A stretch of DNA of 64,000 bases from Blastocladiella emersonii ATCC 22665 (Eukaryota; Fungi; Blastocladiomycota), in assembly GCA_025594325.1 (NCBI GenBank), contig JANHCV010000015.1, positions 620,001 through 684,000 of the forward strand. The letters run 5' to 3'. Position numbers and translations under genes: made by a program. Within the stretch, counting starts at the first letter, position 1. The number at the start of each line of letters is the position of its first letter. The notes beneath the pieces are model-generated. The model was not told where the DNA came from and ran no database searches. It saw only the letters and a program-made list of their open reading frames with translations. Positions 4,481-55,710 of this stretch are shown piece after piece.

Positions 4481-6504
4481 TCTCAGCAGTAGGCTGAGTT
4501 TCTGTGGAGCTGAATTCGCGCTCAAGCTGGGCCATTTGGCACGCCTGACTTTTCTGCCACTCCCATCAACACGCGTCGCGACGCGTCTCGGTCGAGCTCG
4601 AATTATCTTCTCCTCAGTTTTCTCCAAATCCTCTTAATAAATCTACCCTCTAACTCCATGCAACTCAACTAAAATCGTCTGGGGCACAGTTCGACGTCGG
4701 AATACTCTCCGTGTACCTGACCTCTCGCTCTTCCCGCTCCTCCCGCGGCCACTGTGCATATCCTCTACATTTCCTCCGTCCTTCATGTCCTACGTGGGCA
4801 TCCACACGCTTCCCTGACGCTTTGATTTAATTCACCGCTTGCGCGTATTGCGTATTGCGTCTCGCGTTTTTTGTCTCGCGTCTCCTGTCTCGCACTCGTG
4901 GCGTGCGCGAGACACATCGCGTCTCTTGTGTCTCACTAGCACGAGACGCGCACGAGATCTCCTTGGTCGGCGCCGAGCTGTTCGCCGCAATGCACTCGCG
5001 CTTCGACGCGCTATACCCGAGCCGCGACCATCGTCCGTTTGGCGGCCTGCACGTCCTCGCGTTTGGCGACTTTTCCCAGTTCGAGCCCGTCATGGCCCGC
5101 TCGCTCACGGTTCCATCTGAGCAGCCGGTCGAACGCGCACCCGAGCCCGAGGTGGATGCAGCTCATGATGGCGACTCGATGCAGGTCGACGGCGAGCCTC
5201 AGCAGCAGCAGCAGCAGAAGAAGCGCGCGTCCAAGCGCAAGGAGCGGCCAGCGGTCAGCAGAACTCGAACTGACGCCAACATTGGTCGCGATCAATGGCT
5301 CGCCTTCGACTCGGTCTTCTTCCTCGTGCAGCAGATGCGGCAGTCGGGCGACGCGAGCTTCCTCAACGTGCTCCAGGACCTGCGCAACTGCATCGTCTCG
5401 CAGCGCGTGATCGAGTGCCTCGGCTCGCGGCGAGCAGACGTCGTACTGGGCCAGCACCCAGGCCAGCTCGACGACTGGAGCGACCAGGTCCTCATCACGG
5501 CGCAGAACTCGGTGCGCGACGCGTGGAACTCGATGGCCGCCGCGAAACACGCGCGTCGCCTTGGTCTCCAACCCGACGAAATCTTTGACCTCGAGTGCGT
5601 CGATCTCGTCCGCAAGCCCTCCACAACCGGACCACTCCTTTGGCGGCAGCTCGTCATTGAGAGCAGCAGTCAGAGCGAGAGGACCAGCGCATACTTAACT
5701 TCGCAAAACTGCTTCCCTCGAGCAAGACGGACCACATCCCGTCTACCCTCAAGCTGTTTGTTGGCGCGCGTATCATCGTGACGCGGAACATCAACACGCC
5801 GTACGTCTCCGCGTCATGTTCGCCGGCCATTAGGCGCGTGGACTCACCAGCGCTTCCTCGCTTCGCATCGTGTAGTCGCGGCATCGTCAACGGCGTCATT
5901 GGCTGTGTTGAAGGCTTTGCCACCAACGCGAACAACGACATTGATGCAGTCATCATCCGGCCCAACAAGGATCTGGGTCGCATTCCCAAGCTACCCGGGA
6001 TCCCCGACGGCTGCTTCCCGCTGCGCCGCGAGATCGCCTCGTTCCGCCTCAAGAACAAGGTGGCCGGCACATCCAAGACGATCCATCGAGCCCAGTTCCC
6101 GCTCGAGCTCGCGTACGCGCTGACGTCGCACAAGGCCCAAGGGATGACCCTCGAAAAGGTCATCGTTGATCTCGCTGACATGACGCGTGGAGCGTTACCG
6201 TCGCGCTTCCTGTACATGATCCTATCGCAAGTACGGCGCGGTGACGACAGCCGGATTCTGCGTGATCCAGGTATTCAAGGCCTGAATCAAACACAGGATC
6301 AACATTAACTTGCCGAGTACGCTCGACTGCAAAGTCTGGCGGAGGCAACCACTACCTAGTCCTTAGCTCATCAATACATAGCGATTTTGACACGTCATTC
6401 ACTACTCGCCTTTCAACGCGGACGGAACTTGACGTCCAGCATATTTTTAAGTCAGCCTAGTCGCCTACTGCTGAGACAGAGTGTGCAAAGCACACACCCC
6501 TAGT
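4481..6504 (+). mobile_element. Helitron2-type non-autonomous element, copy A (2024 bp, both ends intact)
   Basis: 5' TCTCAGCAGTAGGC (4481-4494) is the reverse complement of subterminal GCCTACTGCTGAGA (6463-6476). 3' hairpin GTGTGC-AAA-GCACAC (6481-6495) and end CCCCTAGT. Contains a PIF1 remnant. Confidence 0.9.
4954..6359 (+). pseudogene. PIF1-family helicase remnant of Helitron Rep-Hel (C-terminal part, frameshifted)
   Basis: Motifs EIS(L)VG, GGLHVLAFGDFSQFEPV, QQMRQSGDASF, GIVNGVIGCV, RAQFPLELAYALTSHKAQGMTL and YMILSQVR lie in shifting frames. Premature TAA at 6306-6308. Confidence 0.88.
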
Positions 6505-7203
6505 GGCGAAATCTACAAAGATGACAAGGCTGCAGGCTCGTTTTGGTGGTACATGACCGGCTACGCGAGCAAGCTGAACCGGATCGCGGTGCTTGACGGG
6601 TTCAAGGCGATTTTTCCGCCCGGCGACTTCTCGTGTCCTCTTGGGTGGTCCGTTGTTGAAGAAGAAGACGACGACGAGGACGCGGCTCTCGCGCGACTCG
6701 AGTGGTGGAAGCAGTCTGGCGTCCCGCTCAAGCTCGCCCCCAGCCACCTCCAGTGCGCGCAGCGCTTCGCGGAGAAGCTTGGCTTCGACCGTATCGCCCA
6801 GTGGTGGCGCGAGTCGGAACTTGAGAACCGGACCCTGTAAGGAGGACGCTGTATGAGTGTCGGTTTATCATACAACTACTTTGATCCACGCCTGTCCTGA
6901 GACGCGTTTCACAGCGCGTCGAACATTGCGGCGTGATCCCAACGTGTTGCCGTTGCGCCACAGAGAGGCCGGGTCGGGCCAGCAAACGCGTCCCGTTTCA
7001 GGGTTCTCCGGCGGCGCAGTCGCGCTTTTGGGGGCTGACCAAGCGTCGCGCCCTCAAGGTTCCGGCGGAGCGCTCGTAGATTGTTGCGTCGAGTGGCCCA
7101 GGGGCTCTCTGCTCGCCGTACAAAAGCGGGCGCGTCCCCCGCACACCCTCCCTCGTCGAGCTCACGGATCAGTCAGTACACGCAACGGATCTTCCTCTAC
7201 ACC

Positions 7204-8289
7204 ATGTCATCGACTACCAGCACCGACCGCCCCGACGCACACAAGATGCAGTACATGCGCCTCGGCAAGACGGGTCTGCAGGTTTCCCGCATCTGCGTCG
7301 GCATGATGTCGTACGGGTCGCCCGAGTGGCAGCCGTGGGTCCTCGACGCCGACCAGTCGCTGCCGCTCCTCCAGGCCGCGTGGGATGCCGGGATCAACTT
7401 CTTCGATTCCGCCGATATCTATTCGAATGGGGAATCGGAGAGAATCCTCGGACGCTTCATGCGCGAGTCCGGCATCAAGCGCACCGAGATTGTTGTCGCA
7501 ACCAAGCTGTTTGGCCATGTTGCCGACTCGCCCAGCATCAACACGTTCGCCGTCCCGCTGCCCAAGCACGCGTCGGTCAACCAGATGGGCCTGTCGCGCA
7601 AGCACATCTTCGACGCGGTCGACGCGTCGCTCGAGCGCCTCGGCACCGACTACATTGACCTGTACCAGATCCACCGCTGGGACCACAACACGCCCATCGA
7701 GGAGACCATGGAGGCGCTCAACGACCTGGTGCGCATGGGCAAGGTACGGTATATTGGCGCGTCGTCCATGTACGCGTGGCAGTTTGCCAAGGCGCAGGCG
7801 GTCGCGGAGCGCAACGGGTGGGCCAAGTTCGTCAGCATGCAGAACCTCGTCAACCTGCTGTACCGCGAGGAGGAGCGCGAGATGCTGCCGCTGTGCCGCG
7901 ACCAGGGCGTCGGCGTCATTCCGTGGTCGCCGCTCGCCCGCGGCATCCTGTCGGGCAAGGGCAAGCAGTCCGACTCGGTGCGCGCCCAGACCGACCGCGC
8001 CCGCAAGGCCCAGGCCGACGGGAACGCCGCCGAGGACGTGGCCGCCGCCACCGACGACCGCATCCTCGCCGCGCTGCGCAAGGTCGCCGAGGCCCGTGGC
8101 GCGCCCATGTCCCAGGTCGCGCTCGCCTGGGTCCTCGCCAAGCCCGGCGTCACGGCACCGATCGTCGGCATGAACAAGGTCGAGTACCTCCACGACGCGG
8201 TCGCTGCCCTGTCCATCAAGCTCACCGACGACGAGATCAAAGAGCTTGAGGCGCCCTACTACCCTAAGGCCGTCTACGGAAACCTCTGA
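7204..8289 (+). CDS. Aldo-keto reductase (YajO/aryl-alcohol dehydrogenase-like), intronless, 361 aa
   Basis: MQYMRLGKTGLQVSRICVG, DSADIY (Asp/Tyr), VATK (Lys), LYQIHRWD (His), GASSM, SMQN, PWSPLARG. ACCATG start. Confidence 0.93.
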   Translation: MSSTTSTDRPDAHKMQYMRLGKTGLQVSRICVGMMSYGSPEWQPWVLDADQSLPLLQAAWDAGINFFDSADIYSNGESERILGRFMRESGIKRTEIVVATKLFGHVADSPSINTFAVPLPKHASVNQMGLSRKHIFDAVDASLERLGTDYIDLYQIHRWDHNTPIEETMEALNDLVRMGKVRYIGASSMYAWQFAKAQAVAERNGWAKFVSMQNLVNLLYREEEREMLPLCRDQGVGVIPWSPLARGILSGKGKQSDSVRAQTDRARKAQADGNAAEDVAAATDDRILAALRKVAEARGAPMSQVALAWVLAKPGVTAPIVGMNKVEYLHDAVAALSIKLTDDEIKELEAPYYPKAVYGNL

Positions 8290-8497
8290 GCGGACCGCTG
8301 CCCGTGTGCAAAATGTATAACTGGTTCATTGCGCCCATTCCGTCGTCCGTGTAACTTGAACGTCCGGTGAGCAACGAGAGAGGGGGAGAAAAGCGCGTTC
8401 AAGAATCATGTGAGATCACCTTCGCGCGGGCGGCGACGCATTTTCGCCCCAAACGAGCCTCGTTGTCTCTTGCTCTCCCTCGACGAATGCCAAACAA

Positions 8498-11400
8498 ATG
8501 AAGAAGAAGCAAAATAAATCAGCAACTAACCGCAAACGCTCCGGCGCTGCAACCGGCGGTGGCCGCATCATCGAGTCGTCGGCGCCTGCCGAGTTCGCGA
8601 CGCCCGGCCTCCCGACGCTCACCTGCGCTTCAATCGTCGGCGAGGACCGCGCGCTTCACTTCTCGCCGTACGGGCGCACCTACCCGCGCGACCTTATCCT
8701 GCACCACCTCCCCGTCGTGAGCAAGGAGCTCAACCTGCTCGTGTTTCAGTGCGGCGACCTGCGCGACGTTGCTCGCACCCTCAGCGACGCGAAGCGCAAG
8801 TAAGCTGAGTCCAACCTCAACTTTGTGCTCAGCGACACGCACCCGGAGGTCCTCGCGCGCAACCTGCTTGTTCTTCGCGCTATCCAGTCGCAGCCCAGCG
8901 GCGATACCTCGCTTCTCGAGTGGCGCATTGCGCAGCTGCTTTACTCGCATGCCCTTGACGCCGACACTCTCGCGTATTGGCACGATGCGATGCGTGGGCC
9001 TCTTTCAGCTGACCTGCTTCCGAACGACCCGATTCGTCTGTTTGACGACGACACACAGCGTGCGATCCGCCATTGCTTCACGTCCTGGCTCGCCGCCGGC
9101 TGGTCTGTCGAAAAACTGGAGGAGGTCCGGAACGCGCACCTCGCTCATGTTCGCGACCCGGCCGACGGCCGCAGCAACCTGCAGCGCATGGTTGACCAAC
9201 TCATGACCCGAGCGCTTGATGCCGAAGGCTGGACGCCGCTTGATAGTGCTGCACAGCGTGCTCTCAAGCTCGAACTTGAGCAGCTTGTTGCGCACGGCAT
9301 CAAGTTCGATGGACCAACGACTTCTTCGGAAAGCGCGGCCTCGGCGCGTGTTGTGAACCCGACTCTGCTTCTCGTCCGCGGCGACGGCTCTCTCGAGTTT
9401 GGCGGGACCGAGTCCGTTTCACCCCTCAACTCGCTAATCTTGGACCCCGAGGACGTCATCGGCGCCACCCAGCACGAGGTTTTGGTGCTCGTGTCGACTC
9501 TCGCTGAGAGCTTTGGTCCCAGAGCCGGACTGCGCCGCAAGGGCTTGATCAGGGCCGTTCCTTACGTGGACATCCAGTCGTGGGCGGTCCACCCGTGCGA
9601 CCCGAACTTCCATTCCGCCGTCACGTTCGTCGCCGGCAATCCGCTCGCTGTGATGGAAAAGCTCGTCGCGCAGGAGCGACGCTTCGATGTCGTGGAGACC
9701 GGGACCATTGCGGACGATCACGGTCTCTTCAACCTGATTGTGCACGCGACACCGCTTCTGAACAGCCACGTGGGATGCAGCCGCAGCCTCATCCACGTCG
9801 CGACCGAGCGCGCTTGGGACTCGCGCGACGACTATCTGCGCCGCAACCTTCCGCTCCCGCTCGAGGCGTATCCGACCTTGCTTGGCGTCAACCTGTACGA
9901 GCGCTCAACGAACGAGGATTGGTCGACGCATGCGAGTCGCTTTGCGTGGAGTAAGGCGCGTGTCGAGGGCCGTGATGAGCCGCACCGCGAGGAGTTTACC
10001 TTCTACCGGCTCGAGTTCCCGACGGTCCCGATCTCGCTCTCCGTGTCGGACTTTGTCACCGACTCGCTCGCGCAGTGTCTTGAGGCGCTCTCTCAGACTC
10101 CGGGTGCGTCTTCTAGCATCCGATTCGAACGATCAGGGTCCGTTTCAACTAACCCTCGCGCCTCGCCTACTACGCTATAGAAATTTCGCACCTCACTGGT
10201 AGCGTCATCCCGAAACTCCTCGGATTCGCGCTCGCCGCGGGCCGCATCGCCTGGCAGGGTCCAACGGCGATCACGCCGCCGTGACCTGAGCTGCCGAGTG
10301 TTTGGGCTTCAATTCTTCCCAGCCCGCTCCTCGCCTCGTACACGGCCGAGATTTTGGTACAGTCGCATCTGTACGGCTTCCCGATCGACTTTGTTGGAAA
10401 GCCGCGCGACACGTTCGTGATTCAACTTGATGGACTCGTGGATTGTCCAGCTGCGGCCACCGGTCTTCCGATTTCGCTTCAGATTGCCGGGGACTCGACG
10501 ATCTTTCGCTTCCGAAGCCTGCGCCTTGCGCCAGGCGAGACCGGCGGGCAGCTGCGCGTCATGACCTTCGTTTCGCGTGACTTTGGCGAGAAGATCGCAT
10601 CGGGCAAAATGCCGATTTCCGTCTGCTTTGGCGATTCCTTACATGTGCCGCTTACCCAAATCAATACGACGCGCGTCCTGACCAAGTCTCTCACCACCAC
10701 TTTCACGAGCTCCATCAAATTTGCGGCGGAGCGGCGGTACTTGCAGTCGCGCGGCGAGAAGCCCGTGCTCACGCCGCCGAGCCAGCAGGTGCTTCCCGTC
10801 CGGTACGCGTACGAGGAGCGCGACTCGATTAAGCTCCTCGTCTCGGTTCCCACGAGTCAGCGGTACGTCCAGGTCGGCAAACTTGCGATCGGCGATGATT
10901 TGTTGCGCTGCGCCGAGGGCGGCGCGCTCCTTCTCTTTGGCAAGAAGGTGCAGATTATGCAACTACCTTGCCGCGTCGGGGTCGAGTCTTTCGGCGTCGC
11001 TCCCGGCTCACGTCTCATCGTGACCCTCTCGCGCCAGCTATCGCCGGTTGACGAAAGGGTTGCGCTGGGCGACATTGACACGCATCTTGCCGATTACTCA
11101 GACCGCTACCGGCTCGGTAAGGTTGAGACGTACGACCAGGGCCTCGCTCTTGCTTCGCTGCGCTACACGATTCCTGGCGGCGACGTTGCCGCGCTTGTTC
11201 AAACGCTTGACTCAACGCACCTGGGCGACGCTGACCCCGGCCGCGCCGTGGCCCTCGCGCGTGCTCCGTCGGCTGCTGACCAGGCGCGCTTCCTCTCCGA
11301 GACCGTCAAGCGACTTCTCGCCGAATTCGCCCGAGGCACGCTTGTCGTCGAGTTCGTCTCCGGCAACGACCCGACCCCCATGGCGGCGGTCCTGCTCTAC

Positions 11401-11958
11401 CACCTGACCGTCGTCCCGGCCGCGAGCACCGCGCGCGCGCCGACGCCCATGCTCTCCATCGAGTTCATCCTGCACCCATCGATTGCGTGCAAGGCGCCGT
11501 TGCATCTGTGGATCGTTGACCAAACCAACGCCCGCGTCCTCAGCGAGATCGGGCGCAAGGCGGAGCGCGGCCGCGCCAAGGTGACGCAGCTTCGGGTGCC
11601 CCGCGAGTACCTTCCTTGCCTCGTTGACCTCTTGATGCAGGCGTACACTTCGGCCCCGCACAAGATCTCGTGGAACGAGGCCAATTTCGATCGTGATTTC
11701 TTCGACGGGTTCCTGCTCAAGAAGCGGCTCTTCCCCGCGCACCTGCTCCCGCTGTACCACCCGCCGGGCGCCGAGTGCCGCGTCGCGAAGCCGAAGCGCG
11801 TCGTCCCGGCCACCGACACGAGCAAACCCGCCGCGAGTAAGGCCGACGTGATCAAGTCTAACGCGACGACCGGTACCCGCGGCGGCGAGGCTTCCGGGGC
11901 TGCTGCCAGCTACGACTACGACTTCGACGACGATGACGTTCGCATTGAAGACGTCTGA
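8498..11958 (+). pseudogene. DUF4470 (SAM-MTase-like) family copy 1; intron 10104-10180; nonsense codons TAA 8801 and TGA 10282
   Basis: FSPYGRTYPRDL...LLVFQCGDLRDVARTL...FVLSDTHPEVLARNLLVL matches the DUF4470 pattern (P.GN.P..L...LL.GCGD.R.....D..PE.LARN.LL). Paralogues have TAC and TGG at the two stop positions. Confidence 0.78.
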
Positions 11959-12097
11959 AGCTCGTGCGGGTTCGCGTCGCACTGGGTTCGGATTGGCCTT
12001 GAGTTTTCTTGTAATAAATGTTTTCGCTGGTTTGTTTCATTCCTTGAGCGTACAAGTAATAGCCCGGTTGAGGGGGCGAACACGCGAGAGACAGTTT

Positions 12098-12121
12098 GAG
12101 ACGCGTCGATCAATCATGTGA
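12098..12121 (+). promoter_or_regulatory. Composite motif GAGACGCGT-N8-CATGTGA (MluI/MCB core + E-box-like); best-conserved copy
   Basis: Related copies at ~8393-8413, 17108-17131, 18311-18334, 46655-46677 (minus strand, 23/23 identical) and 42420-42444 (minus strand, N9). Confidence 0.5.
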
Positions 12122-12236
12122 TTCATATGGTCGTGTGGCGTTTCCCGTTCCCATCGCGAGGCTGAACGCGAGGCGAGGTTCACACGCTCGGGCCGTGCTC
12201 CCCTCGTCCTCACTCACCACGGCCCATGTAAAACCA

Positions 12237-13657
12237 ATGAAGAAGAAGCAAAAGAAGTCTAACACTACCCGCATCAGCTCCACCGCTGCGGGCAGACCTG
12301 CGAACGCGGCCCCGTCTGCGCCGCCCGCACCGCCCGCCCTTCCGACGCTGACGTGCACCTCCGTCGCGGCCGAGGACCGCGCGCGCCACTTCTACCCGCT
12401 CGGGCGCTCGTACCCGCGTGACTTGGCCATGAACCACTTCCCCGTCGGACGCGAGGATATCAACGTGCTTGCGTTCCAGTGCGGCGACTTGCGCGACGTG
12501 GCGCGCACGATCAGCGACGCGAAGCGTAATTATGCCAAGGCGAACCTCAATTTCACGCTTAGCGATACGCATCCGGAGGTGCTTGTCCGTAGTCTTCTTG
12601 TGCTTCGCGCCGTCCAAGCGCACGACGACAGCGGCGGCGGCAATATCTCGTTTCCCGACTTGTACGTCGCCCAGCTGCTCTACTCGCACGTCATTTATCC
12701 CGATGCCCTCGCGTTCTGGAGCAAGCACATGCGCGACCTCCTCTCGATGGACTTGCGGGCGGCTGGCCCGATTCGACTCTTGGACGACGGTACGCAGCGC
12801 GCAATCCATCATTGCTTGACGTTTTGGCTCGCCGCCAACTGGTCAGTCGATGACCTGGACAACACGCGCGACGCTTGTTTTGGTCGCGTAGGCGACCCGG
12901 TGGACGGTGGCGCGGATCGGCAAGATTCACTCCCGCGCCCAAGCAATTGCGTTTAACTCGCTTCGCTATGCACTTCCTGCCAACATGGCCGCGCTCGAGC
13001 GGGACCTAGACCCGCTGAGTATCCGCGATGCAAGCGGCGCCGCGTCAAGCACCGGGCCTGAGCCATCCGCTGCAGACCAGGTGCGCTTTCTCTCGAATAC
13101 CGTCATTCGGCTTTTTATGGCATTTCAAGCACGGCTATCGTGTCATCGAGGTCGTGACGGCCAAGGGCACAGCGCCGGTTGCTGTGACTCTGCTTCACCG
13201 CGTGCCAGTCGTCCCGCCTGCAAGCGTTGCCCACGGCCCGACGCTCGTCCTCTTGATCGAGTTCATTCTGCACCCGTACATCGCGCGGCGGCCGCCGTCG
13301 CCTTGCTGGATCATCGACAAAGAAAACGTGCGGCTGCTCCGCGAAATAGGAGGCAAAGCGCTCCGCGGCAACGCGAAAGTGACGCAGCTCGTTGTCCCAC
13401 GCGCATACCTTCCTTGCCTTGTCGACTGTCTGCTGTTTGCCTTCTCTTCCATCCCGCGCAAGGTTTACAACAACGAGGCCAACTTTGAGCCCGCGTTCTT
13501 TGAAGTGGTCAAGTCGCGGCTCTTCCGCGCCCACCTGCTGCCGCTGTTCGCACCTCCTGGCAGCGAGCGCGACGGCTCCGTCGAGCGTGACAACGAGGAT
13601 GCAAACGAGTAAAGCCCCGATTTTGGTGTAGTTGACGACCGGATCGTCGAGGTTTGA
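12237..13657 (+). pseudogene. DUF4470 family copy 2; about 2-kb internal deletion at ~12915, frameshift at ~13115, premature TAA at 13610
   Basis: The N-terminal DUF4470 part (HFYPLGRSYPRDL..QCGDLRD) joins directly to the C-terminal part (RIGKIHSR..., EANFEPAFF). The canonical end DDRIVEV* is at 13634-13657, in frame after the TAA. Confidence 0.78.
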
Positions 13658-16600
13658 ATGAACGATGGTACGTGCGCGTCGACGACCGACGAGGACCGCA
13701 CGCATAACTTCTTCCCGTTCGGCCGCTCGTATCCTCGCGACCTTCACATGCACCACTTGGCTGCCAGCTGCAAGGAGCTCAACACGCTTGTCTTCCAGTG
13801 CGGCGACCTGCGCGACGTTGCCCGCACGATTGCCGACTCGAAGCGCAAGTACGCCGATGCCAACCTCAACTTCCTGGTCAGCGACACGAACCCGGAAGTC
13901 CTCGTCCGCAGCTTGCTCGTGCTTCGCGCCGTCCAGACGCACCGTGACAGCGATATCTCGACCCTCGCACTGCATGTGGCCCAGCTCCTTTACTCGTGTA
14001 AAATCTATCCCGACGCGCTCGATTTTTGGCGCAAGCACATGCGCGACCTCCTCGACATGAAATGGCCTTCGGATGTCGCTGTTCGACTCTTCGATGCCGA
14101 GACGGAGCGCGCGATCCATCACTGCCTTACGGCTTGGCTCGCTTGTGACTGGTCTGTCGAGAAGTTGGACCGTAAGCGCCGAGAAGCGCAGCTTCACTTC
14201 GAAGATCCGGTCGTTGGAAGCGAGCGCCTTGACCGGATGGGCGACGACTTGGATCTCCGCGCCATCGACGAGAGCGGGGCCGACCCGCCCAATGCTGCGA
14301 AGAAGGAGGCGATTGCCATCGAGACTTTTGGGCTGATCGCAATCGGTGTCGATTTCATGCACCCACGTGGTCGGCGCCGCGTTGGTGGCTATGTTGGGAC
14401 GACCGAACCTTATAAAGCGCCCTCTGTCAATCCGACCTTGCTTCTCGCTCGCGACGACGGCTCGCTCGAGTACGGCGGCCCCAACACGCTTGCACCGCTC
14501 CATCAGCTCGTTCTTGACTTTGACGATATTCTCGGCGGTATCCACCGCGATGTGGTGCAGCTTGTGTCGATTCTTGTCGAGCAATTTGGGCCCAAGGCCG
14601 AGCTGCGCCGCCAGGGCAAGTCGAAGGCCGTTCCTTACGTTAGCGTTCACTCTTGGGCGAACCGGCCATGCGACCCGGCCTTTCATTGTAGTATCGCTTT
14701 CGCGTCTGGCCAGACGCTCGCCCTAATGGAAAAGCTTGCCAATCGGCCGCAGCGCTTCCATGTCGTGGAGACCGGGACCATCGCGGATGACCACGGCCTT
14801 CTCAACGTTCTTGTGCACGCATCCCCGCTTCTCGGCAGCAACTGGCAGTACAATCGCAGCGTCGTTCGTGCTGCAACCGAGCGCGCTTGGGACTCGCGCG
14901 AGGATTTCGTACGCGACGCGGTTCCCCTCTCCTTCGAGGCGTACCCTACGCTGCTTGGTGTCAGCCTGTACGAGCGAGCTTCCGATGATCACTGGTCGAC
15001 GCACGCGAGCCGGTTCGCCTGGAGCACCGCGCGCGTCGAGGGACGCGACCAGCCGCACCGCGAGGAGTTTACCTTCTACCGCCACGAGTTCCCGACGGTG
15101 CCCATCTCGCTTGCCAAGTCGCCCTTCCTGCTCGACTCGCTTGTGCAGTGCATCGAGACGCTTGCTTGTTCACACGGTACGTGCGCCTTCGTTTCTTTTG
15201 AGGTATTGGGTATATATCTCGCTTCTCACCCATGTTTCCATCGGAACCGTGTAGAGCGTTCGCGCCTCACGGGTGGGCTTCTCCCGAAGCTACTCGGGTT
15301 TGCGCTCTCTGCTGGTCGAATTTCTTGGGATGGCCCAACAATGGTTTCGCCTCCATGGCCGGATATGCATCAGCTTTGGACCATGGTCAATACTTGTTCA
15401 TCTCTTCTTCCTCACGCAAGTGAAATCTTTGCACAGGCGCAGCTTCACGGCTTCCCGATCAGCGTGCACGACATGCAGCACGATGCGCACCTTTCGCGCC
15501 TCGAGTGCATTGTTGAATGCCCATACTACGCTGCGGGGTGTCCGCTGATGCTCCAGCTTGCTGCTGATGGTAAGCTCCACGAATTCCACAGCCTGAGAGT
15601 TTCGCCTGGTGCGGATAGCAAACAGCTTCGCCTCTCGACGTACATTCCGCAGTACCTCGCGGACAAGCTTGCGACCCCGCAGAGAAAGCTCTCCGCTTAC
15701 TTTGACTACAGGCACACGATGCCAGTTTTGGATTTCAAGACGGAGCGTGTTCCAGTCGGTGCGCTTTCCAGTACTTTTGTGAGCAACATCAAGTTTGCGT
15801 CAGAGCGCCGCTACCTTCCTCCTCGCGGCGGCGAGCCTGTGCTTACGCAGCCGGATAAGATTATCTTGCCCATCCTGCATGCGACGGAGGAGCGCGACGT
15901 GATCCGCCTCGTACTTTCGGTTCCGCCGTCGCGGCAGCCGCTTCGGTTTGGGACGCTTGCTATCGGAATGGAGGAGGCTCGCTGCGCAGAGGGCGGTGCG
16001 ATTGTCGTTTCGGGCCCCGATTTGCAGATCATGCAGTTCTCGTACCGCGTCGGCGTCGTCAGTGTCGCTGCTGCTCCAGGCTCAATCTTCAATGTGACGG
16101 CTGTGCGCATCCTGTCGCCGGTGAACGAAGCGGTCGCGCTGGGTGAGATGTACCCGAATATTGCTGATTACTCAGACCGCTTCCCGCTTGGCAAGGTCGA
16201 CTCGCGCGACCAGATGACCGCGCTCGCCTCGCTCCAGCACGCGATCTCGACGGGTGAAATTGACGCTGCGGCGCTCGAGCATGCACTCAAGTCGGCCCGT
16301 GTGGATGATTCGAGTGGCCCTGCTTTGGCGGCCGCGAAAAAGCCATCGGCGGCAGACCAGGCGTTTTTCCTCGGCATCCTCGTCTGGGAGCTGTTCGTCG
16401 AATTTGTTCGCGGGGCTCGCGTCATTGAGCTTACGGTATCGGACGATTCTTCACTCGTCGCCGTCATCCTGATGCACGGCGTGACCGTTGTGCCACCCGC
16501 GAGCCACGCACATGCTCCCACGCCCGTCCTCAACCTCGAATTCATTCTGGACCCATCGATTGCGACTCCTACTCCTTCGCCCGAGTGGATCATCGACGAT

Positions 16601-16975
16601 GGCAACAAGCGCTTGCTTCCGCTGATTGCGGGCAACGCGCACCGTGGCAAGGCGAAGGTGCGGCGGCTCAAGGTCCCGCGCGCGTACCTTCCCTGCCTCG
16701 TCGACTGTCTCATGCTTGCCTTCTCGTCGATTCCGTTCAAGATGTCCTTCAACGAGGCCAACTTCGAGCCCGCGTTCTTTAAGCAGGTCAAGTCGCGTCT
16801 CTTCCGCGCCTACTTGCTCCCGCTCTACCATCCGCCAGGCGCCGAGTGTCCTCGTGCCTCAAGCCAGAAGGGCGAGGCTGACGACGGCAACGCCGCCGAG
16901 AGCGAGACCATCGATGCGGGCGGTGCTGACGACGAGCAACCTGGTGCTGGAGACGATCGGATCGTCGAAGTTTGA
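13658..16975 (+). CDS. DUF4470 family copy 3, the only uninterrupted full-length-domain member (1105 aa unspliced; in-frame 78-nt intron 15177-15254); lacks the MKKK leader
   Basis: Single long ORF colinear with copy 1. A GTACGT..GTAG intron sits at the family's conserved phase-1 position. Ends DDRIVEV*. Confidence 0.72.
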   Translation: MNDGTCASTTDEDRTHNFFPFGRSYPRDLHMHHLAASCKELNTLVFQCGDLRDVARTIADSKRKYADANLNFLVSDTNPEVLVRSLLVLRAVQTHRDSDISTLALHVAQLLYSCKIYPDALDFWRKHMRDLLDMKWPSDVAVRLFDAETERAIHHCLTAWLACDWSVEKLDRKRREAQLHFEDPVVGSERLDRMGDDLDLRAIDESGADPPNAAKKEAIAIETFGLIAIGVDFMHPRGRRRVGGYVGTTEPYKAPSVNPTLLLARDDGSLEYGGPNTLAPLHQLVLDFDDILGGIHRDVVQLVSILVEQFGPKAELRRQGKSKAVPYVSVHSWANRPCDPAFHCSIAFASGQTLALMEKLANRPQRFHVVETGTIADDHGLLNVLVHASPLLGSNWQYNRSVVRAATERAWDSREDFVRDAVPLSFEAYPTLLGVSLYERASDDHWSTHASRFAWSTARVEGRDQPHREEFTFYRHEFPTVPISLAKSPFLLDSLVQCIETLACSHGTCAFVSFEVLGIYLASHPCFHRNRVERSRLTGGLLPKLLGFALSAGRISWDGPTMVSPPWPDMHQLWTMVNTCSSLLPHASEIFAQAQLHGFPISVHDMQHDAHLSRLECIVECPYYAAGCPLMLQLAADGKLHEFHSLRVSPGADSKQLRLSTYIPQYLADKLATPQRKLSAYFDYRHTMPVLDFKTERVPVGALSSTFVSNIKFASERRYLPPRGGEPVLTQPDKIILPILHATEERDVIRLVLSVPPSRQPLRFGTLAIGMEEARCAEGGAIVVSGPDLQIMQFSYRVGVVSVAAAPGSIFNVTAVRILSPVNEAVALGEMYPNIADYSDRFPLGKVDSRDQMTALASLQHAISTGEIDAAALEHALKSARVDDSSGPALAAAKKPSAADQAFFLGILVWELFVEFVRGARVIELTVSDDSSLVAVILMHGVTVVPPASHAHAPTPVLNLEFILDPSIATPTPSPEWIIDDGNKRLLPLIAGNAHRGKAKVRRLKVPRAYLPCLVDCLMLAFSSIPFKMSFNEANFEPAFFKQVKSRLFRAYLLPLYHPPGAECPRASSQKGEADDGNAAESETIDAGGADDEQPGAGDDRIVEV

Positions 16976-17229
16976 ATGGTGAGCGAAGAGCGTGCCTCGC
17001 GAAGTTGTGTCACATTTCAGTTTACGAACGTGTAATTTTTATTCCATGGCTCTCGCTTGAAGTAGCTCATCCGCGTGATTGATGCGGCGACTCGTGCGAG
17101 ACAATTCGAGACGCGTCGATATATCATGTGATGTCAGCCTCCTGGTCACTTGATCGCCTTCGGGGTCAGCCCTCACTTTGCTCGCTGCCGAACGGCAACG
17201 TTTCCCTCCCGGCGACGCATGCTACACCA

Positions 17230-18179
17230 ATGAAGAAAAAGCAAAAGAAACGCAGTACTTTATGCAACCGCTCTGCCGCTGCAGACGGGTCGACTTCCTC
17301 GGCTTCCACGGCGCCGCTCGCGCTTAGGACATTGACATGCACGTCGACCGCTGGCGGGGACCACTCGGTCGACTTCTTCCCGTTTGGGCGCTCTTATCCG
17401 CGCAACTTACTCATGCATCACTCGCTGGAAGGGTGCAAGGAGCTTAATGTCCTCGTGTTCCAGTGCAGCGATCCCGGTGCGTTGACTTTTGCCCCCTGCC
17501 TGACTCTATGAATGTTCGCTGACACTCATCCCTCGACCAGCTTCGAATGCGACCGGTAATCTCGTTGCAAAACTGCTCGGCTTTGCCCTTTCCGCCGGCC
17601 GTATCGCGTCGAGAGGGCCACCGCCATTTTCCGACCCTTTGCCCGGCTTGCGTGAACTCTGGATCTCGATTCGTAGCAGTCATTTGCTCGCGCCTTTCGC
17701 CAGCGAGATCTTTGCACAGGCGCGGCTCTGCGGCTTCCCCATCGATTTCAGGGGTCCGTGGGGCGAGAGCGAACTCCATCGCATCGACGGTGTGGTGAAC
17801 CGCCCTGTAGCGGCGAGCGACGTCCCACTTTCCCTTCAAATCGATGCAGGCGAACTTGTCCATGAGTTCCGCAGCTTGCGAGTTGCTTCCGGCGGCACCA
17901 GCGAGCGGCTGCGCATATCGACGTATGTCCCGTATGAGCTTGCCAGGCAAGTCCATTGGGGTCAAGTTGCGCTTAGCGTTCACTTTGGCAATGTCTGCCA
18001 GCTCCCGCTTGACCAGATCACCGCGACGCCCGTTCCGTTCGGCGCTCTCTCGAACACTTTCTCGTCCGCTTCGAGCCACTCAAACCACGCTCATTTCCCG
18101 CCCATGTTCTTTCCCTTGCTCAGCCACCAGGCGCCAAACGTCACCTCCACTCGCTGACAAGCGGATCATTGAGGTTTGA
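17230..18179 (+). pseudogene. DUF4470 family copy 4, doubly internally deleted mini-gene (intron 17477-17540; spliced frame open to 18157)
   Basis: MKKKQKK...FFPFGRSYPRNL..QCSD jumps to the conserved intron and then LVAKLLGFALSAGRI. A second jump after SNTFSS leads to DKRIIEV* in another frame. Confidence 0.7.
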
Positions 18180-33010: not shown

Positions 33011-33029
33011 CGCTCGGCGCTGATCCGCG

Positions 33030-34150: not shown

Positions 34151-37100
34151 ACTAGGGGTGTGTGCTTTGCACACTCTGTCTCAGCAGTAGGCGACTAGGC
34201 TGACTTAAAAATATGCTGGACGTCAAGTTCCGTCCGCGTTGAAAGGCGAGTAGTGAATGACGTGTCAAAATCGCTATGTATTGATGAGCTAAGGACTAGG
34301 TAGTGGTTGCCTCCGCCAGACTTTGCAGTCGAGCGTACTCGGCAAGTTAATGTTGATCCTGTGTTTGATTCAGGCCTTGAATACCTGGATCACGCAGAAT
34401 CCGGCTGTCGTCACCGCGCCGTACTTGCGATAGGATCATGTACAGGAAGCGCGACGGTAACGCTCCACGCGTCATGTCAGCGAGATCAACGATGACCTTT
34501 TCGAGGGTCATCCCTTGGGCCTTGTGCGACGTCAGCGCGTACGCGAGCTCGAGCGGGAACTGGGCTCGATGGATCGTCTTGGATGTGCCGGCCACCTTGT
34601 TCTTGAGGCGGAACGAGGCGATCTCGCGGCGCAGCGGGAAGCAGCCGTCGGGGATCCCGGGTAGCTTGGGAATGCGACCCAGATCCTTGTTGGGCCGGAT
34701 GATGACTGCATCAATGTCGTTGTTCGCGTTGGTGGCAAAGCCTTCAACACAGCCAATGACGCCGTTGACGATGCCGCGACTACACGATGCGAAGCGAGGA
34801 AGCGCTGGTGAGTCCACGCGCCTAATGGCCGGCGAACATGACGCGGAGACGTACGGCGTGTTGATGTTCCGCGTCACGATGATACGCGCGCCAACAAACA
34901 GCTTGAGGGTAGACGGGATGTGGTCCGTCTTGCTCGAGGGAAGCAGTTTTGCGAAGTTAAGTATGCGCTGGTCCTCTCGCTCTGACTGCTGCTCTCAATG
35001 ACGAGCTGCCGCCAAAGGAGTGGTCCGGTTGTGGAGGGCTTGCGGACGAGATCGACGCACTCGAGGTCAAAGATTTCGTCGGGTTGGAGACCAAGGCGAC
35101 GCGCGTGTTTCGCGGCGGCCATCGAGTTCCACGCGTCGCGCACCGAGTTCTGCGCCGTGATGAGGACCTGGTCGCTCCAGTCGTCGAGCTGGCCTGGGTG
35201 CTGGCCCAGTACGACGTCTGCTCGCCGCGAGCCGAGGCACTCGATCACGCGCTGCGAGACGATGCAGTTGCGCAGGTCCTGGAGCACGTTGAGGAAGCTC
35301 GCGTCGCCCGACTGCCGCATCTGCTGCACGAGGAAGAAGACCGAGTCGAAGGCGAGCCATTGATCGCGACCAATGTTGGCGTCAGTTCGAGTTCTGCTGA
35401 CCGCTGGCCGCTCCTTGCGCTTGGACGCGCGCTTCTTCTGCTGCTGCTGCTGCTGAGGCTCGCCGTCGACCTGCATCGAGTCGCCATCATGAGCTGCATC
35501 CACCTCGGGCTCGGGTGCGCGTTCGACCGGCTGCTCAGATGGAACCGTGAGCGAGCGGCTCGAATTGGAAAAAGTCGCAAAACGCGAGGACGTGCAGGCC
35601 ACCAAACGGACGATGGTCGCGGCTCGGGTACAGCGCTTCGAAGCGGAAGTGCATGGCGGCGAACAGCTCGGCGCCGACCATGGAGATCTCGTCGATGAGG
35701 ACAAACTTGACGGGGCGGAACGAGGCCTCGAGCTCGGCCTTGGCTTTGTCGCTCATCAGCTTGGTCGCCGAGACGACAGTACCGATGCCGCACATGGCGT
35801 GGATCGTGGAGCCGCCGATGGGCGCCGCGGCTACGCCAGTCGGCGCGCAGATCTTGAGCCACAAGCTGCAGCCCTAGGTGGTGAACATGTCGCAAATCGA
35901 GTCGATGACGCGACTCTTGCCTGTGCCCGCCTCGCCGTGGACGAGCATGAGGAGCTGCTCGACGTCAGCGTCGCCGCGCTTGATGGCATCAAGCGTCGAC
36001 TCGACGTGCTCGACGTAGAGCCCCCGAAGATACGAAGCGAGCTGCTCCTGCTGCACGAGCTGTACATATACGGCCGGCGGTGCCACACCGTCGTCTGCTT
36101 GAACGAATCGAGCGCGAGGTGGCTCCGTCGAGCGGTTTGCGGCAAACCGACAGGCGTTCTCGTCGGCCTTTTTAGTCAGGTCGGTGTAGTTGACGAGTTC
36201 CGCGAACCACGTCCGATCTGAGTTGACCTTGAGCAGCTGCTGGCGAAGCTCGAGTGGCGGAGCAGGCACGGGCGCGTTCGAGTTTGGGAGCAGTTCGCAT
36301 TGTACTACTGAGATGAGGCCACGTGGTGGTCATTCATGGAGATGATTGACAGGATCTCGTGCAGGAACGCGTCGTTGCCGTGAGCTTCTTACGCGATGCC
36401 GACGGGCGTGATATCACCGTCAGCCTCGTCGTCGTTACCCATGCCAGCACCGCCAGCGCGTCGAAGGTCGACCTGCTCGGGCGTCGCGCTGTTGTCGGCC
36501 TCCGAGTTGTCGACCAGCTTGCCGGGCGACGTTCACGTATTCGCGGAAGTTGTTGATCCACCGGAGCCGGTCGATGCCCTGCTCGAGCGTGTTCTCAAAG
36601 AGATAGAGCGTCTGCAACCACATGTCGCCGCGAACCGGGATAACCATGTTCATGGTCGCGCGCGCATCGCAACGATGAGCTTGCCCACTGCAGAATGCGT
36701 GTCGCGGAACTTGTACCGCGGTTCGGCGTGGCGACCACGCTTGGCGGGTGGCGCGTTGCCGTCTTCAACATAGTCGCCAAGCAGCGGCCGCTGCGTACGG
36801 CCCTAAGTGGCCTTGATGGGCTCTACGCGACAGCATCGCACAAGGTCGTCGAGAAAGAGCGGTACGAGTTCGTTGGGCCGGTGCATGTCGTGGTCGCTGA
36901 TCGTGATCTTGTCGGTGATCGGGCAATTTGAAAACGTAATGCGCTCGTCGTCGTTCTTGTCGTACTGCCCGAGTATACGTTCATCGTCGACTGCCGCAGT
37001 GCCGTTCTCGCCGACGCGATGCACGTTGGCCGTGTTCCACGCTGCGTCCGAACCCGACGGATTTGTGACCATGCGCAGGAGCTGGTATAGGGGGACATGC

Positions 37101-46654: not shown

Positions 46655-46677
46655 CACATGATTGATCGACGCGTCTC
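46655..46677 (-). promoter_or_regulatory. Exact 23-nt inverted copy of the 12098-12120 motif in a convergent intergenic region
   Basis: CACATGATTGATCGACGCGTCTC is the reverse complement of GAGACGCGTCGATCAATCATGTG. Confidence 0.45.
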
Positions 46678-49701: not shown

Positions 49702-50598
49702 GTCGGGGGAGTGCAGTGCGCGGTTTTCTAGTTCTATCAGAGCAAGAGAGCGGGTGGGCGTCGAGAAGGGGCGAGAGAAGGCGGCGGCGAACCGGCGGCG
49801 ACCCGGTGGCCCCACGCTGGCCGTTGAAAACGAAAAGCGGCGCAGAGGACCCGCCGCCACAGTTCAAGTCCGTCACCTGACCGCCTGCGCCACACCCCAA
49901 AAGGGCGCAACGCGTGCGCGCGCGGGTTGCAACGGAATCCCTGCCCATCGCGAAGCCCTGCACTCGGACGTAGCAAATGGATCGAACGGACTTGATGCAT
50001 ATTGCTCGTTGCATGGAGTGTCTGCTGCGCGTAAGGGTTGATGAAGTGGGCGGAGGAGAGCGGTGCCCGCCGTCGCGCTTCGGTTCGCGCTCGCGCAAGC
50101 AGACTCGGTCGACCTCGACGTGTGATGCAAGGAAACCCCAAACTGTCGCTCTCTTGCACGCGCTAGGCAGTCAGCTCGGCGGCGCGCATGCGACTTGTCG
50201 GGACCTACGCCGCTCGTTGTCGCGGATGACAGCACTTCGCCGCCGTTGCTCGTCATCCAGCTTGACCCAACGCGCGCTTAGTCTTATCTTCACGGAACGA
50301 AATCTAGCGCGCGGAACGCGACGATGACGCGCTGATGCTCGCGATGGGATCGAGAAGCGTGCGCAAGCTCATGCACGGCTGAATGGCCGAACCGCCGCGG
50401 TCGCGTGCTTCGACGCCATCGCCTGCATCCTTCGGCAACTTTGCGCGTGCCGCTGCGACGTGTGACCGACGCGTCGCTTTCGACCCCGCCGACTCGCGTG
50501 CGACACCTGCGATCGGGCTATCCTGATACGTGCGCTTGACGCCATCCGCTCGTAAGCGCAAGTCGCGCCATTCCCCAACCGTGAGCGGCCGGCGATCG

Positions 50599-50605
50599 TA
50601 TAAAA
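50599..50605 (+). promoter_or_regulatory. TATA box (TATAAAA) upstream of the subtilisin gene
   Basis: Canonical TATAAAA ending about 74 bp before ATG 50679, in otherwise GC-rich DNA. Confidence 0.6.
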
Positions 50606-50678
50606 GCCGCGAGCGCCCCGCTCCTCCCGATGCCGTTCACCAAGCAGCCGCTAGACCTAGACCGACACCCTGCCCACC

Positions 50679-51950: not shown

Positions 51951-52060
51951 GGTCGCGGTCGCGGTCGCGATGGTGGCGAGAGTAGTACAAAACACTGTCA
52001 TGGTTTTGCTTCATAAAGAATGTTCGATTACAAATACGAGTCGAGTCACGGAGGGCAGGA

Positions 52061-55000
52061 TCGCTCAAGGCCGCGCAGACCTTCTCGTCGACTCGCTCAA
52101 TTGACAAGTTCACGCTGGTCGACCACTACATGGGCGGCTTCGTGTCGGCCTTCTACTCGCTCAAGTTCTCAGCAGTAGGCTGAGTTTCTGTGAAGCTTAA
52201 TTCGCGCTCAAGCTGGGCCATTTGGCACGCCTGACTTTTCTGCCACTCCCATCAACACGCGTCGCGACGCGTCTCGGTCGCGCTCAAATTATCTTCTCCT
52301 CACTTTTCTCTAAATACTCTGATACAATCTATCCTGTAACTCTATGCAACAAGGTTGGCACCATAGAAAACATCATCTAGCGGAGTCATGACCGATTTGA
52401 TCCACTTCTGTCTTTCGCCTTCTTCCCTACCCCCGTGTTCATCACAATCGTGAATTCACTTCTTTGACTGTTTTTTTTTGCTCAGATATCCTTCTCTTGA
52501 AGCGTTCTGTGTCCATTTTCTTCGCGTTACATGGAGCTCTGAAGGAATCCCAAGATCTGGTTTTCCGCTTCTTGGCTTCAACCCCGCAAACGTCATGTAC
52601 TACATCACCAACTACGTCGCCAAGGTGCCGCCGTACTCTTACAGCACGTACGCCCCCCTCGAGCGCGCCAAGAAGTTACGCTCCAGCTCTCTGTCAGCTC
52701 CATTCTGCGCGGCCTTGTCAACCGCTCGACCACGTCGCGCGAGATCAGCGGCCAGCAGATCGCGCTCGACCTAACCCGCAAGGGCGAGGAGACGTGTGTC
52801 TACACGACGTACAGCTTCGCCCACGTGTCGCTCTACCAGTTCCTGCGCATGGTCACGAACGCGGCGGGCTCAGACGCGGCGAGCAACACAACTGACGCGC
52901 AGCCCGTCGGCGAGGACGGCGCTGCGGCAGTCGACGATGAACGCGAGCTCGAGCAGGAGGACGACGAGAACGACGACGAGCGCATCACGTTCGAGAACCG
53001 CCCAATCACCGACAAAGTCACCATCAGCGACCACTACATGCACCGGCCCAGCGAGCTCAAGTCGATCTCGCTCTACGACTTTGTCTGGTGCTGTCGCGTG
53101 GAGCCCATCAAGCCCACGACGAACCGCTCGCAGTAGTCCGTGCCCGACGACAATGCCGACGACGGCAACGTGCCGCGCGCCAACCGCGGTCGCCACGCCG
53201 AGCCGCGGCACAAGTTCCGCGGCACGCATGCTTTATTTGGTAAGCTCATCGTCGCGATGCGCGCGACCAAGGTCGTTCCTGTGCCACTGTTCAAAAAGCA
53301 GGTCAGCCAGTCGTCCGATATCGGCAGCCTCGAGACGCATGCCATGATCTCCATGATCCTGTTCAAGCCGTTCCGCGCCATGAACGAGGTGATCCGGGCT
53401 CGCGGCGAGACGTGGTCGCAGACGCTCATCTCTTCAAGAACACGCTCGAGTAGGGCAGCGACCAGCTCCGGTGGATCAACAGCTTCCGCGACTACGTGAA
53501 CGCGTCGCCCGGCAAGCTGGTCGACGATTTGGAGGCCGACAACAGCGCGACGCCCAAGAAGGTCGACCTTTGACGTGCCGGCGGTACTGTAATGGGAAAC
53601 GATGACGAGGGTGACTGCGAGATCATGCCCGTTGGCATCGCCCAGGAGGCCCACAACAACGACGCGTTCCTGCACAAGATCATGTCAATCATGTTGAGAA
53701 GCGACCAGCACGTGGCCGAGCTCCTCACCTCGGCTGTAAACTACGGGCTGCTCTCAGACTTGAACGCGACAGTGCCCGTTCTGCCACTCGAACCTCGACA
53801 GCAGCTGCTCACGGTCGACTCGGAGCTGGCGTGGTTCGCGCAAATCGCCAACTACGCCGATCTGGCCAGGAAGGCCGACGAGGATGCCCGTCGGTTTGCT
53901 GCAGAACGCTCCGCAGAGCCACCTCACGCTCGACTCGTTCAAGCAGACAGTGGTGTCGCACCGCCAGCCGTCCGGGTGCAGCTCGCGCGACAGGAGCAAC
54001 TCGCTCCGTACCTTCAAGGGCTCAACGTCGAGGAGCGCCGCGTCGTCGAGCACGTCGAGTCGACGCTCAATGCCATCAAGCGTGGCAACGCTGATGTGCG
54101 GTATCGGTACCATCGTCTCGGCGACCAAGCTGATGAGCGACAAAGCCTAGGCCAAGCTCGAGGCCTCGATCTCCATGGTCGGCGCTGAGCTGTTCGCCGC
54201 AATGCATTTGCGCTTCGACGCGCTGTACCCGAGCCGCGACCATCGTCCGTTTGGCGGCCTGCACGTCCTCGCGTTTGGCGACTTTTCCCAGTTCGAGCCC
54301 GTCATGGCCCGCTCGCTCACGGTTCCATCTGAGCAGCCGGTCGAACGCGCACCCGAACCCGAGGTGGATGCAGCTCATGATGGCGACTCGATGCAGGTCG
54401 ACGGCGAGCCTCAGCAGCAGCAGCAGCAGAAGAAGCGCGCGTCCAAGCGCAAGGAGCGGCCAGCGGTCAGCAGAACTCGAACTGACGCCAACATTGGTCG
54501 CGATCAGTGGCTCGCCTTCGACTTGGTCTTCTTCCTCGTGCAGCATATTCGGCAGTCGGGCGACGCGAGCTTCCTCAACGTGCTCCAGGACCTGCGCAAC
54601 TGCATCGTCTCGCAGCGCGTGATCGAGTGCCTCGGCTCGCGGCGAGCAGACGTCGTACTGGGCCAGCACCCAGGCCAGCTCGACGACTGGAGCGACCAGG
54701 TCCTCATCACGGCGCAGAACTTGGTGCGCGACGCGTGGAACTCGATGGCCGCCGCGAAACACGCGCGTCGCCTCGGACTCCAACCTGACGAGATCTTTGA
54801 CCTCGAGTGCGTCGATCTCGTCCGCAAGCCCTCCACAACCGGACCACTCCTTTGGCGGCAGCTCGTCATCGAGAGCAGCGGTCAGAGCGAGAGCGACCAG
54901 CGCATGCTCAACTTCGTAAAACTGCTTCCCTCAACAAGACGGACCACATCCCGTCAACTTGACTTTGACGTTCAGTCATTTGCCAGCCAGCCCAGTCACC

Positions 55001-55710
55001 TACTGCTGAGACAGAGTGTGGAACGCACACACCCCTAGTACCCAGACCGCCTCGACAAGACGGTCCTGCTGTCGCCCATCGGCCTGCAGGGCTTCACTGC
55101 GAGCGGCGGGTTCCGAGGCGCGAGCCTCGGCCAGTGCCTGCAGACGGAGCTCCTGCACCGCGCGTGGAACATCACCCCGCAGCGGCTCCTGTCGCTCGCC
55201 GGCGAGACCCGCGCGCGCGCCGTCATGTCGCGCGTCCGGTCGCGCGTCGCCAACGTGTTCGGCACCAACTCGGTCCCGCCAGAGACCCTCGTCGAGTACC
55301 TCCTCGCTGGCGTCCAGCGGTCGCCCGGCCGGTCCGGCGAGGCTGCCTTCACCGCCCTCATGTCGCCGTTCCGCGGGTGGACGCTCCCGCTCGACGCGCA
55401 GCTGCGCGAGGCGATTGCGGGTGGCAAGTTCCCGCCGCTCGTCCTCGCGTACGGCGTCGCGGACTGGATCGACCCGCGCTACGCCGTGCACACCCTCGCT
55501 CCGGCGGTCCCGCACGGACGCGCGCACGCGTACCTCCTCGACGGCGCGGGGCACCACGGGTACGTCGAGGCCGCGCACGAGTTCCACCAGGTCGTCCTGC
55601 GCGGCGAGCTCGGGTCCAGCGGGTGCGCCGTCCGCGAGGCCAAGGACGACCCCAATAAGGTCGCGGTCATGGAGGCCGCGCGCAGCCCGTCGTTCATGTC
55701 CATTGCGTAA
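52061..55710 (+). pseudogene. ABHD4/5-Cld1/Ict1-like alpha/beta hydrolase, 5'-truncated and split by Helitron C (parts ~52061-52166 and 55040-55710)
   Basis: The empty-site join reads IDKFTLVDHYMGGFVSAFYSLKYPDRLDKTVLLSPIG, with the GHSMGG elbow mutated to DHYMGG. Later motifs SGEAAF, YGVADWID and AGHHGYVE. Confidence 0.82.
52167..55039 (+). mobile_element. Helitron2-type non-autonomous element copy C (2873 bp, both ends intact)
   Basis: 5' TCTCAGCAGTAGGC, subterminal CCTACTGCTGAGA (54999-55011) and end CCCCTAGT. Rep catalytic motif YYITNYVAK (52598-52624), REISGQQIAL and PIF1 fragments with internal deletions. Confidence 0.9.

Follow-up and report, generated by a model that had tools for sequence, protein, structure and literature searches.

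The copies of a Helitron-like transposon carried by a 64,000-nt stretch of the Blastocladiella emersonii ATCC 22665 genome (assembly GCA_025594325.1, contig JANHCV010000015.1, positions 620,001 to 684,000 of the forward strand; the whole stretch is referred to here as the window) raise the question of whether their ends, which combine features of Helitron1 and Helitron2, mark an intermediate lineage. An earlier note, made from the letters alone, had favored such a hybrid. The analysis described here indicates that the copies are very probably internally deleted, non-autonomous rolling-circle transposons of the Helitron2 type (HLE2), and that the family adds one more member to an established class of transposons rather than being a hybrid lineage. 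A second question concerns the T found on both sides of the copies, and whether one or two such residues were present in the target before insertion.

The three copies in the window, designated A, B, and C, have in common a 14-nt asymmetric terminal inverted repeat (ATIR), a 3' hairpin, and the closing string CCCCTAGT, which ends 28 nt past the 3' ATIR (coordinates of all features are listed in Table 1). Copies A and C both open with TCTCAGCAGTAGGCTGAG, the first 14 nt of which return as the reverse complement near the 3' end. The ATIR itself, TCTCAGCAGTAGGC, has five matches in the window compared to 0.32 expected by chance, and the 28 nt beyond the 3' ATIR consist of CAGA, the hairpin GTGTGC-AAA-GCACAC, and ACCCCTAGT. 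The 5' ATIR folds on itself by pairing of CTCAGC with GCTGAG, with a calculated energy of -5.9 kcal/mol as single-stranded DNA (z = -4.2 to -4.3). The 3' hairpin is predicted in all window copies and is modest, its stem comprising 5 bp in copy C and 6 bp in the other two. Copy B is 100% identical to copy A across the last 1408 nt and, further inward, matches copy C at 78–91%; since this similarity ends at ~37190 and is followed by unique DNA, copy B must be 5'-truncated. All the window copies hold decayed remnants of a Rep-helicase (RepHel), with 25–46% protein identity to the sister element described below, and these decayed pieces identify the copies as deletion derivatives. What the copies retain is only what transposition needs in cis, namely a self-folding 5' ATIR on one side and a 3' ATIR, a short hairpin, and CTAGT on the other. 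The presence of ATIRs and two hairpins, with no endonuclease, is the architecture of Helitron2-type elements. In this respect the description given in the earlier note, of three similarly built copies with a 5' ATIR that forms its own hairpin, holds, with copy B lacking its 5' end. The layout that it gave for the 3' end, a hairpin followed by a terminal string, is also correct, although the string quoted there missed the AC located between the hairpin and CCCCTAGT.

The same arrangement is found throughout the genome, which was searched as 32.6 Mb in 21 contigs (C followed by a number denotes a contig). Each end has at least 40 matches genome-wide, and the fixed geometry first noticed in the window, with the 3' ATIR placed 28 nt before a terminus reading CTAGT, could be followed in 28 unique 3' ends; the spacing is kept in 26 of them, and the base after CTAG is T in 25 and C in the remaining three. 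Paired ends delimit elements of 1.3 to 4.2 kb, and no paired-end element of the family is long enough for autonomy. The family was active recently, as 17 of the 5' ends are 97–100% identical over 200 nt and copies A and B are indistinguishable over the 1408 nt mentioned above. Head-to-tail or circle-like junctions, searched for as CTAG followed by 0–4 nt and TCTCAGCAGTAGG, were absent from the genome.

The flanks of these copies define the target. In the 29 unique 5' flanks, the position next to the element (-1) is always T, position -4 is W in 28, and position -2 is R in 25 and never C. The base that precedes the shared T, proposed earlier to be variable on the basis of two copies, is indeed A in 12 cases, G in 13, and T in four, and the base that follows the shared T shows no preference except that Ts are few. 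The target is therefore W-N-R-T, and the element's 3' end, TAGT, itself fits the same motif.

Both complete copies in the window read xT/TCTC...CTAGT/y (a slash marks a junction or a nick), as had been reported, and a T is thus present at each end. A single T in the empty site, originally reconstructed for copies A and C, is supported at these two and at three further insertions. In the case of copy C, the upstream piece of the interrupted gene, ending in ...FVSAFYSLK, aligns to residues 18–26 of P0001, the only database relative found, and the downstream piece resumes at Y27/N30; in P0001, the sequence FISASYALK-YGINRLEKLVLLSPIGIQGF runs across the junction. The two host frames join only as AAG-TAC, which requires one T. 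The host pieces 4286–4480 and 6505–6837 around copy A make one open reading frame (ORF) only with one T, and the phase of the G+C content at third codon positions (GC3) shifts by one between the two sides (k = 1). This phase was informative for copies A and C only, the other 18 pairs being located in weakly coding DNA. Spanning ORFs of 639 codons at C6:1016198-1018222 and of 629 codons at C1:70300-73207 are likewise open only with one T. For the fifth insertion, C20:797955-799262, the 5' flank (query 23–493 of 500) matches the paralog C20:518042-518509, the 3' flank matches C20:517954-518035 from its first base, and ungapped extension puts both Ts on base 518035. An ORF across the junction of one of the CTAG/C copies (C21:1231925-1234258) was dropped, as it looks like GC-rich junk read in the wrong frame. 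The exact-pattern search returned no empty site for C20:391111-394186, and no paralog was found for the 5' flank of C20:342235.

According to PMC11417382, HLE2 elements are inserted between T and T, and a literal insertion of this family between two host Ts, with the single T resulting from misread frames, would agree with the T...T flanks of nearly all copies and with the copy nested at C12:49994-52335, which is in frame with TT. This explanation is hardly probable in view of the five independent one-T sites, which include the ...ALK-Y... homolog that continues across the junction of copy C and the paralogous site in which both Ts fall on one base. The flanks fit the wording "between T and T", yet five empty sites hold one T, and the T-T rule holds for this family only as a description of flanks. 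The occurrence of T at both ends and of one T in the empty site could also be explained by an element TCTC...CTAG inserted through a 1-nt staggered cut that duplicates one target T, in which case both flanking Ts would be derived from the host; variable target-site duplications have been reported for some Chlamydomonas Helitron2 (PMC3627910). We consider this very unlikely, since rolling-circle transposition of a single strand does not require a duplication, the duplications on record measure 7–19 bp and are tied to one-ended events, and a C is found in three of 28 3' flanks while the 5' flank stays T. Insertion of this family adds the element and exactly one T.

Mobilization of the copies would depend on an HLE2-group Rep-helicase acting in trans, and its Rep tyrosine may nick one short motif that occurs in the 5' junction of the donor, in the 3' terminus, and in the target. 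No duplication would be required by such a mechanism, and one of the two flanking Ts would be carried by the element. All three substrates have the T at an identical position, so that sequence does not distinguish a cut before it from one after it. About half of our confidence goes to a nick before T, which would yield an element TTCTC...CTAG and the context R/T, as in canonical Helitrons (CTRR/T, A/T) and in proto-Helentron. A little under half goes to a nick after T, yielding TCTC...CTAGT and WNRT/, as was assumed for FoHeli, and in agreement also with the element-borne T runs of Helentrons (PMC4067079); the small remainder is left to a true 1-bp duplication. The three CTAG/C copies, set against 29 of 29 5' flanks with T, lean slightly to the nick before T, but these numbers are too small to decide. 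We can tentatively speculate that a single tetranucleotide, W-N-R-T, is what Rep reads in the 5' junction of the donor, in the element's 3' tip (TAGT), and in the target, in which case the T-T rule would count one T twice. The special value for mapping the Rep nick site that had been attributed to this family was not borne out, since a circle junction would distinguish a T borne by the element from a 1-bp duplication but would not assign the T to either end, and the family is no better suited to this purpose than others.

For the transposase side, the whole genome was screened with Pfam for Helitron_like_N; of the 12 matches, only one has a long open frame. Among them there was no intact autonomous copy of the window family; the long frame belongs to a sister element on C2 with the same end design. 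Its ORF of 1481 codons comprises Helitron_like_N and the first half of PIF1. The 3' hairpin of the sister element, an 8-bp stem formed by GTGTGTGC and GCACACAC (z = -2.5), is located within the last 31 nt. A base change in its 5' ATIR is mirrored in its 3' ATIR, as functional pairing predicts, and the 5' stem is kept with other bases. An AP-endonuclease domain separates Helentrons from Helitron2. No endonuclease domain was found in the 5.8-kb sister element, in which only Helitron_like_N and PIF1/AAA domains were detected, and its length leaves no room for one. Three regions considered as intact autonomous copies (C2:630-646 kb, C16:384-400 kb, and C4:1236-1246 kb) were rejected, as they are fragmented or lie in palindromes.

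The Rep motif of the sister element, VEAQGWGSLHIH (GSLHIH), is of the G-S-L-H-x-H type, in which S is the signature of the Helentron side, with L at this position on the Helitron side (Thomas et al., PMC4067079). A full HMMER search with RepHel gave 1424 relatives, the best of which are ~30% identical, and G[ST]LH.H is present in nearly all of the best 150 of these 1424. DUF6570, the marker of HLE2 in the HELIANO paper (PMC11417382), is found in 27 of the 27 nearest full-length relatives, and an endonuclease (Exo_endo_phos) in none of the 27. RepHel remnants at C2:633139 and C4:1241562 also have DUF6570 immediately upstream, and both regions have internal sequence in common with copy C. The neighbors of RepHel in a protein atlas were weak Helitron_like_N ones only, a word-indexed protein search with RepHel gave no match at E <= 1e-5, and no match was found among solved structures (that of Helraiser being covered only if present in the collection searched). 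Judged from the motif of the sister element, the domains of its relatives, the DUF6570 beside the kin of copy C, and the absence of an endonuclease, the predicted transposase side is HLE2, of the Helitron2 kind.

Several described elements resemble this family in part. FoHeli1 and FoHeli2 of Fusarium oxysporum start with TC(AG) and have a self-hairpin 5' ATIR, and their authors were unable to tell a TC start from a TTC start (Chellapan et al. 2016, PMC5148889). The likeness extends to the TC start, the self-hairpin 5' ATIR, the 3' ATIR followed by a hairpin tens of nt from the end, the lack of an endonuclease, and an invariant T by the 5' end within a 4-nt target motif (TNAT in FoHeli, WNRT here). 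In turn, FoHeli elements end with ATATTTT, have the 3' ATIR 38–51 nt from the end and an ATIR of 12 nt, and reside in an ascomycete, whereas this family is characterized by CTAGT, a distance of 28 nt, an ATIR of 14 nt, and a zoosporic host; the DNA of the two is unrelated, judged by the sequences quoted in PMC5148889. Thus, the start, hairpin, and type of target agree with FoHeli1/2, and the type of end and the ATIR spacing disagree.

The proto-Helentron of Phytophthora infestans, 5'-TT...CTAG-3' inserted between A and T, was described as an intermediate between Helitrons and Helentrons (Thomas et al. 2014, PMC4067079), and was later placed within HLE2; a 5' stem-loop and short inverted repeats were also found in it (PMC11417382). 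It has an HLE2-type RepHel with no endonuclease, and its TT...CTAG before T is the same as in this family if the T is assigned to the 5' end. It differs in being ~14 kb long, with SET and other cargo genes, in having a layout of stem-loop and repeats termed 'HLE2-reverse', and in its target, which is A/T, whereas here A and G are about equally frequent before T. Helitron2 was defined by a hairpin-forming 5' ATIR 0–2 bp from the end, a 3' ATIR 20–30 bp from the end and just before a hairpin, and T as the first base (Bao and Jurka 2013, PMC3627910). All of these defining features are present in this family, including the position and spacing of the ATIRs (the 5' one occupies position 1, or 2, of the element), the 5' hairpin, and the subterminal 3' hairpin, as is the lack of an AP-endonuclease. 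The difference lies in the target, reported for Helitron2 as TTTT/T or C (as quoted in PMC5148889) and being WNRT here, and in the CTAG(T) end. The combined occurrence of the CTAGT end, the 28-nt spacing, and the WNRT target is family-level variation.

Canonical Helitrons (Helitron1, for example Helraiser) have neither ATIRs nor a 5' hairpin, their target is strictly A/T, their Rep motif is G-L-P-H-x-H, and they have no DUF6570. This family is similar to them in its 5'-TC, in a CTRR-like 3' end that follows a hairpin (TCTC...CTAG, with the last T left out), in the absence of a duplication and, if the T is on the host side at the 3' end, in the R/T context of the nick. It does not share with them the strict A/T target, the absence of inverted repeats and of a 5' hairpin, or a Rep of the HLE1 clade. 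A true intermediate, having inherited the Helitron1 nick sites (TC...CTAG, R/T) from a common ancestor and combining them with Helitron2 ATIRs, would be informative on the split of the two groups. With the T given to the 5' end, the R/T context and the CTAG end do match canonical CTRR/T and A/T, the ORF of the sister element has no detectable DUF6570, and its best relatives are remote. Such an origin is nevertheless improbable, considering that all 27 of the nearest full-length relatives are DUF6570-positive HLE2 proteins, that a Helentron-type Rep motif is present (PMC4067079), that the solved structures searched gave no match, and that the same mixture of ends already occurs in two kinds of HLE2 members, proto-Helentron and FoHeli1/2. 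Since every Helitron1-like trait has a precedent inside HLE2, the hybrid lineage put forward in the earlier note is not supported.

Several observations weigh against placing the copies among the deletion derivatives of HLE2 and against the single T. At four of the five one-T sites, the evidence consists of reading frames or of a 7-nt ungapped projection (73–77% identity) rather than of a sequenced empty allele, and the frames of the decayed helicase in which the C12 copy is nested join with two Ts; the latter site was counted as ambiguous, because it consists of six consecutive Ts and its host already contains stops and a deletion. The energy of the 3' hairpin in copies A and C is no better than that of shuffled sequences. 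No intact autonomous copy of the window family was found in the genome, and the RepHel of the sister element is only ~40% identical in protein sequence to the remnants in the window copies. The C-terminal part of the sister helicase is encoded in a different frame and is interrupted by an in-frame stop within a conserved motif (...PYMVLS-stop-ARR...), and DUF6570 went undetected in the sister ORF, unlike in all its nearest relatives.

Some features of individual copies were also recorded. In copy A, the helicase remnant is interrupted at 5805–5876 by an intron-like GTACGT...TAG gap, positioned as in the sister element, and the ancestral transposase gene probably had an intron there. Three copies of 1308 bp (C20:797955-799262, C20:769254-770561, and C6:783355-784662) exchange flanks: the 5' flank of the copy on C6 is shared, over at least 1.5 kb and at 99.9%, with one of the C20 copies, and its 3' flank, likewise over at least 1.5 kb and at 99.9%, with the other. 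This pattern resembles the outcome of recombination among copies or of circular permutation in a segment of ~27 kb. For the 3' flank of C20:769254-770561 there is a 97% paralog, C21:1452575, that begins exactly at the junction T. At C1:~78826, a 5' end of the family is preceded, at a distance of 4 nt (TTAT), by an inverted 3' hairpin of the sister family with CTAGG, and on the opposite strand this arrangement resembles a 3' end made from a reversed 5' end. Tandem 5' ends are present at C6:~1095877, where an 18-nt hairpin, TCTCAGCAGCAGGCTGAG, is followed by T and by a full 5' end of the sister family; they lie inside an element of the copy C type, the paralogs read ACGTTCGAG there, and the host sequence does not resume nearby. 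At C4:~1012494, a 3' end of the sister family is nested in a copy of the window family. Numerous paralogs lacking the interruption exist for both of these nested insertions, on C6 and on C4.

The surroundings of the copies in the window consist in part of an array of diverged paralogous genes (8478–17282 and 57191–61542; repeats D1–D11, 60–83% identical), situated beside and between the transposon copies. The gene split by copy C (51986–52165 and 55039–55707) has, by eye, a likeness to alpha/beta-hydrolases that was not confirmed by any family scan. Its nucleophile elbow reads D-H-Y-M-G-G in place of the expected G-x-S-x-G, and it may have been an inactive enzyme already, or a decaying gene. 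The pieces of host genes around copies A and C gave no significant match in searches of Pfam and of solved structures.

Table 1. Coordinates of the transposon copies, their ends, and the adjoining host sequences (positions in the window unless a contig is given).
Feature	Position	Strand	Description
Copy A	4481-6504	+	complete non-autonomous element, 2024 bp; decayed PIF1-helicase remnant with intron-like gap
Copy A, 5' ATIR and hairpin	ATIR 4481-4494, hairpin to 4498	+	CTCAGC-AGTAG-GCTGAG; flanking T = 4480
Copy A, 3' end	6463-6504	+	ATIR 6463-6476; hairpin GTGTGC-AAA-GCACAC 6481-6495; terminus ACCCCTAGT 6496-6504
Copy B	34151-~37190	-	5'-truncated, ~3.04 kb; 3' terminus 34151, hairpin 34160-34174, 3' ATIR 34179-34192
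Copy C	52167-55039	+	complete non-autonomous element, 2873 bp; RepHel remnants; flanking T = 52166
Copy C, ends	5' ATIR 52167-52180; 3' ATIR 54998-55011; hairpin 55016-55030	+	1 mismatch in 3' ATIR; CTAGT closes at 55039
ATIR matches	4481, 34179, 52167	+	
ATIR matches	6463, 54998	-	
3' terminus GTGTGCAAAGCACACACCCCTAGT	6481-6504	+	
3' terminus GTGTGCAAAGCACACACCCCTAGT	34151-34174	-	
3' terminus GTGTGCAAAGCACACACCCCTAGT	55016-55039	+	2 mismatches
Host ORF piece 5' of copy A	4286-4480	+	ends ...HEDFDVY
Host ORF piece 3' of copy A	6505-6837	+	begins GEIYKDDKAAGSFWWY
Host gene piece 5' of copy C	51986-52165	+	ends ...GGFVSAFYSLK
Host gene piece 3' of copy C	55039-55707	+	begins YPDRLDKTVLLSPIGLQGF; 41% identical to P0001
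Sister element	C2:727234-733032		5799 bp; starts T/TTTCAGCTGTAGC; ends GCTACAGCTGAGA and 31 nt closing ACCTAGT; same end design

The family opens no new class, as its end design and the ambiguity of the T are both already present in the literature. Its practical consequence is that one end would be set one base off in this family if HLE2 boundaries were drawn by the T-T rule. The HLE2 literature cited here includes no biochemical study of an HLE2 transposase, and the match between the WNRT target and the TAGT of the 3' tip provides a simple, testable idea of what the Rep of HLE2 recognizes. For the host, the elements are of consequence in that the family has inserted into genes, two of them in the window and at least two elsewhere. 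If the nick is R/T, the nick chemistry of canonical Helitrons (CTRR/T, A/T) would be kept across both Helitron groups, and this family would show the conserved nick more plainly than do the T-run ends of other HLE2.

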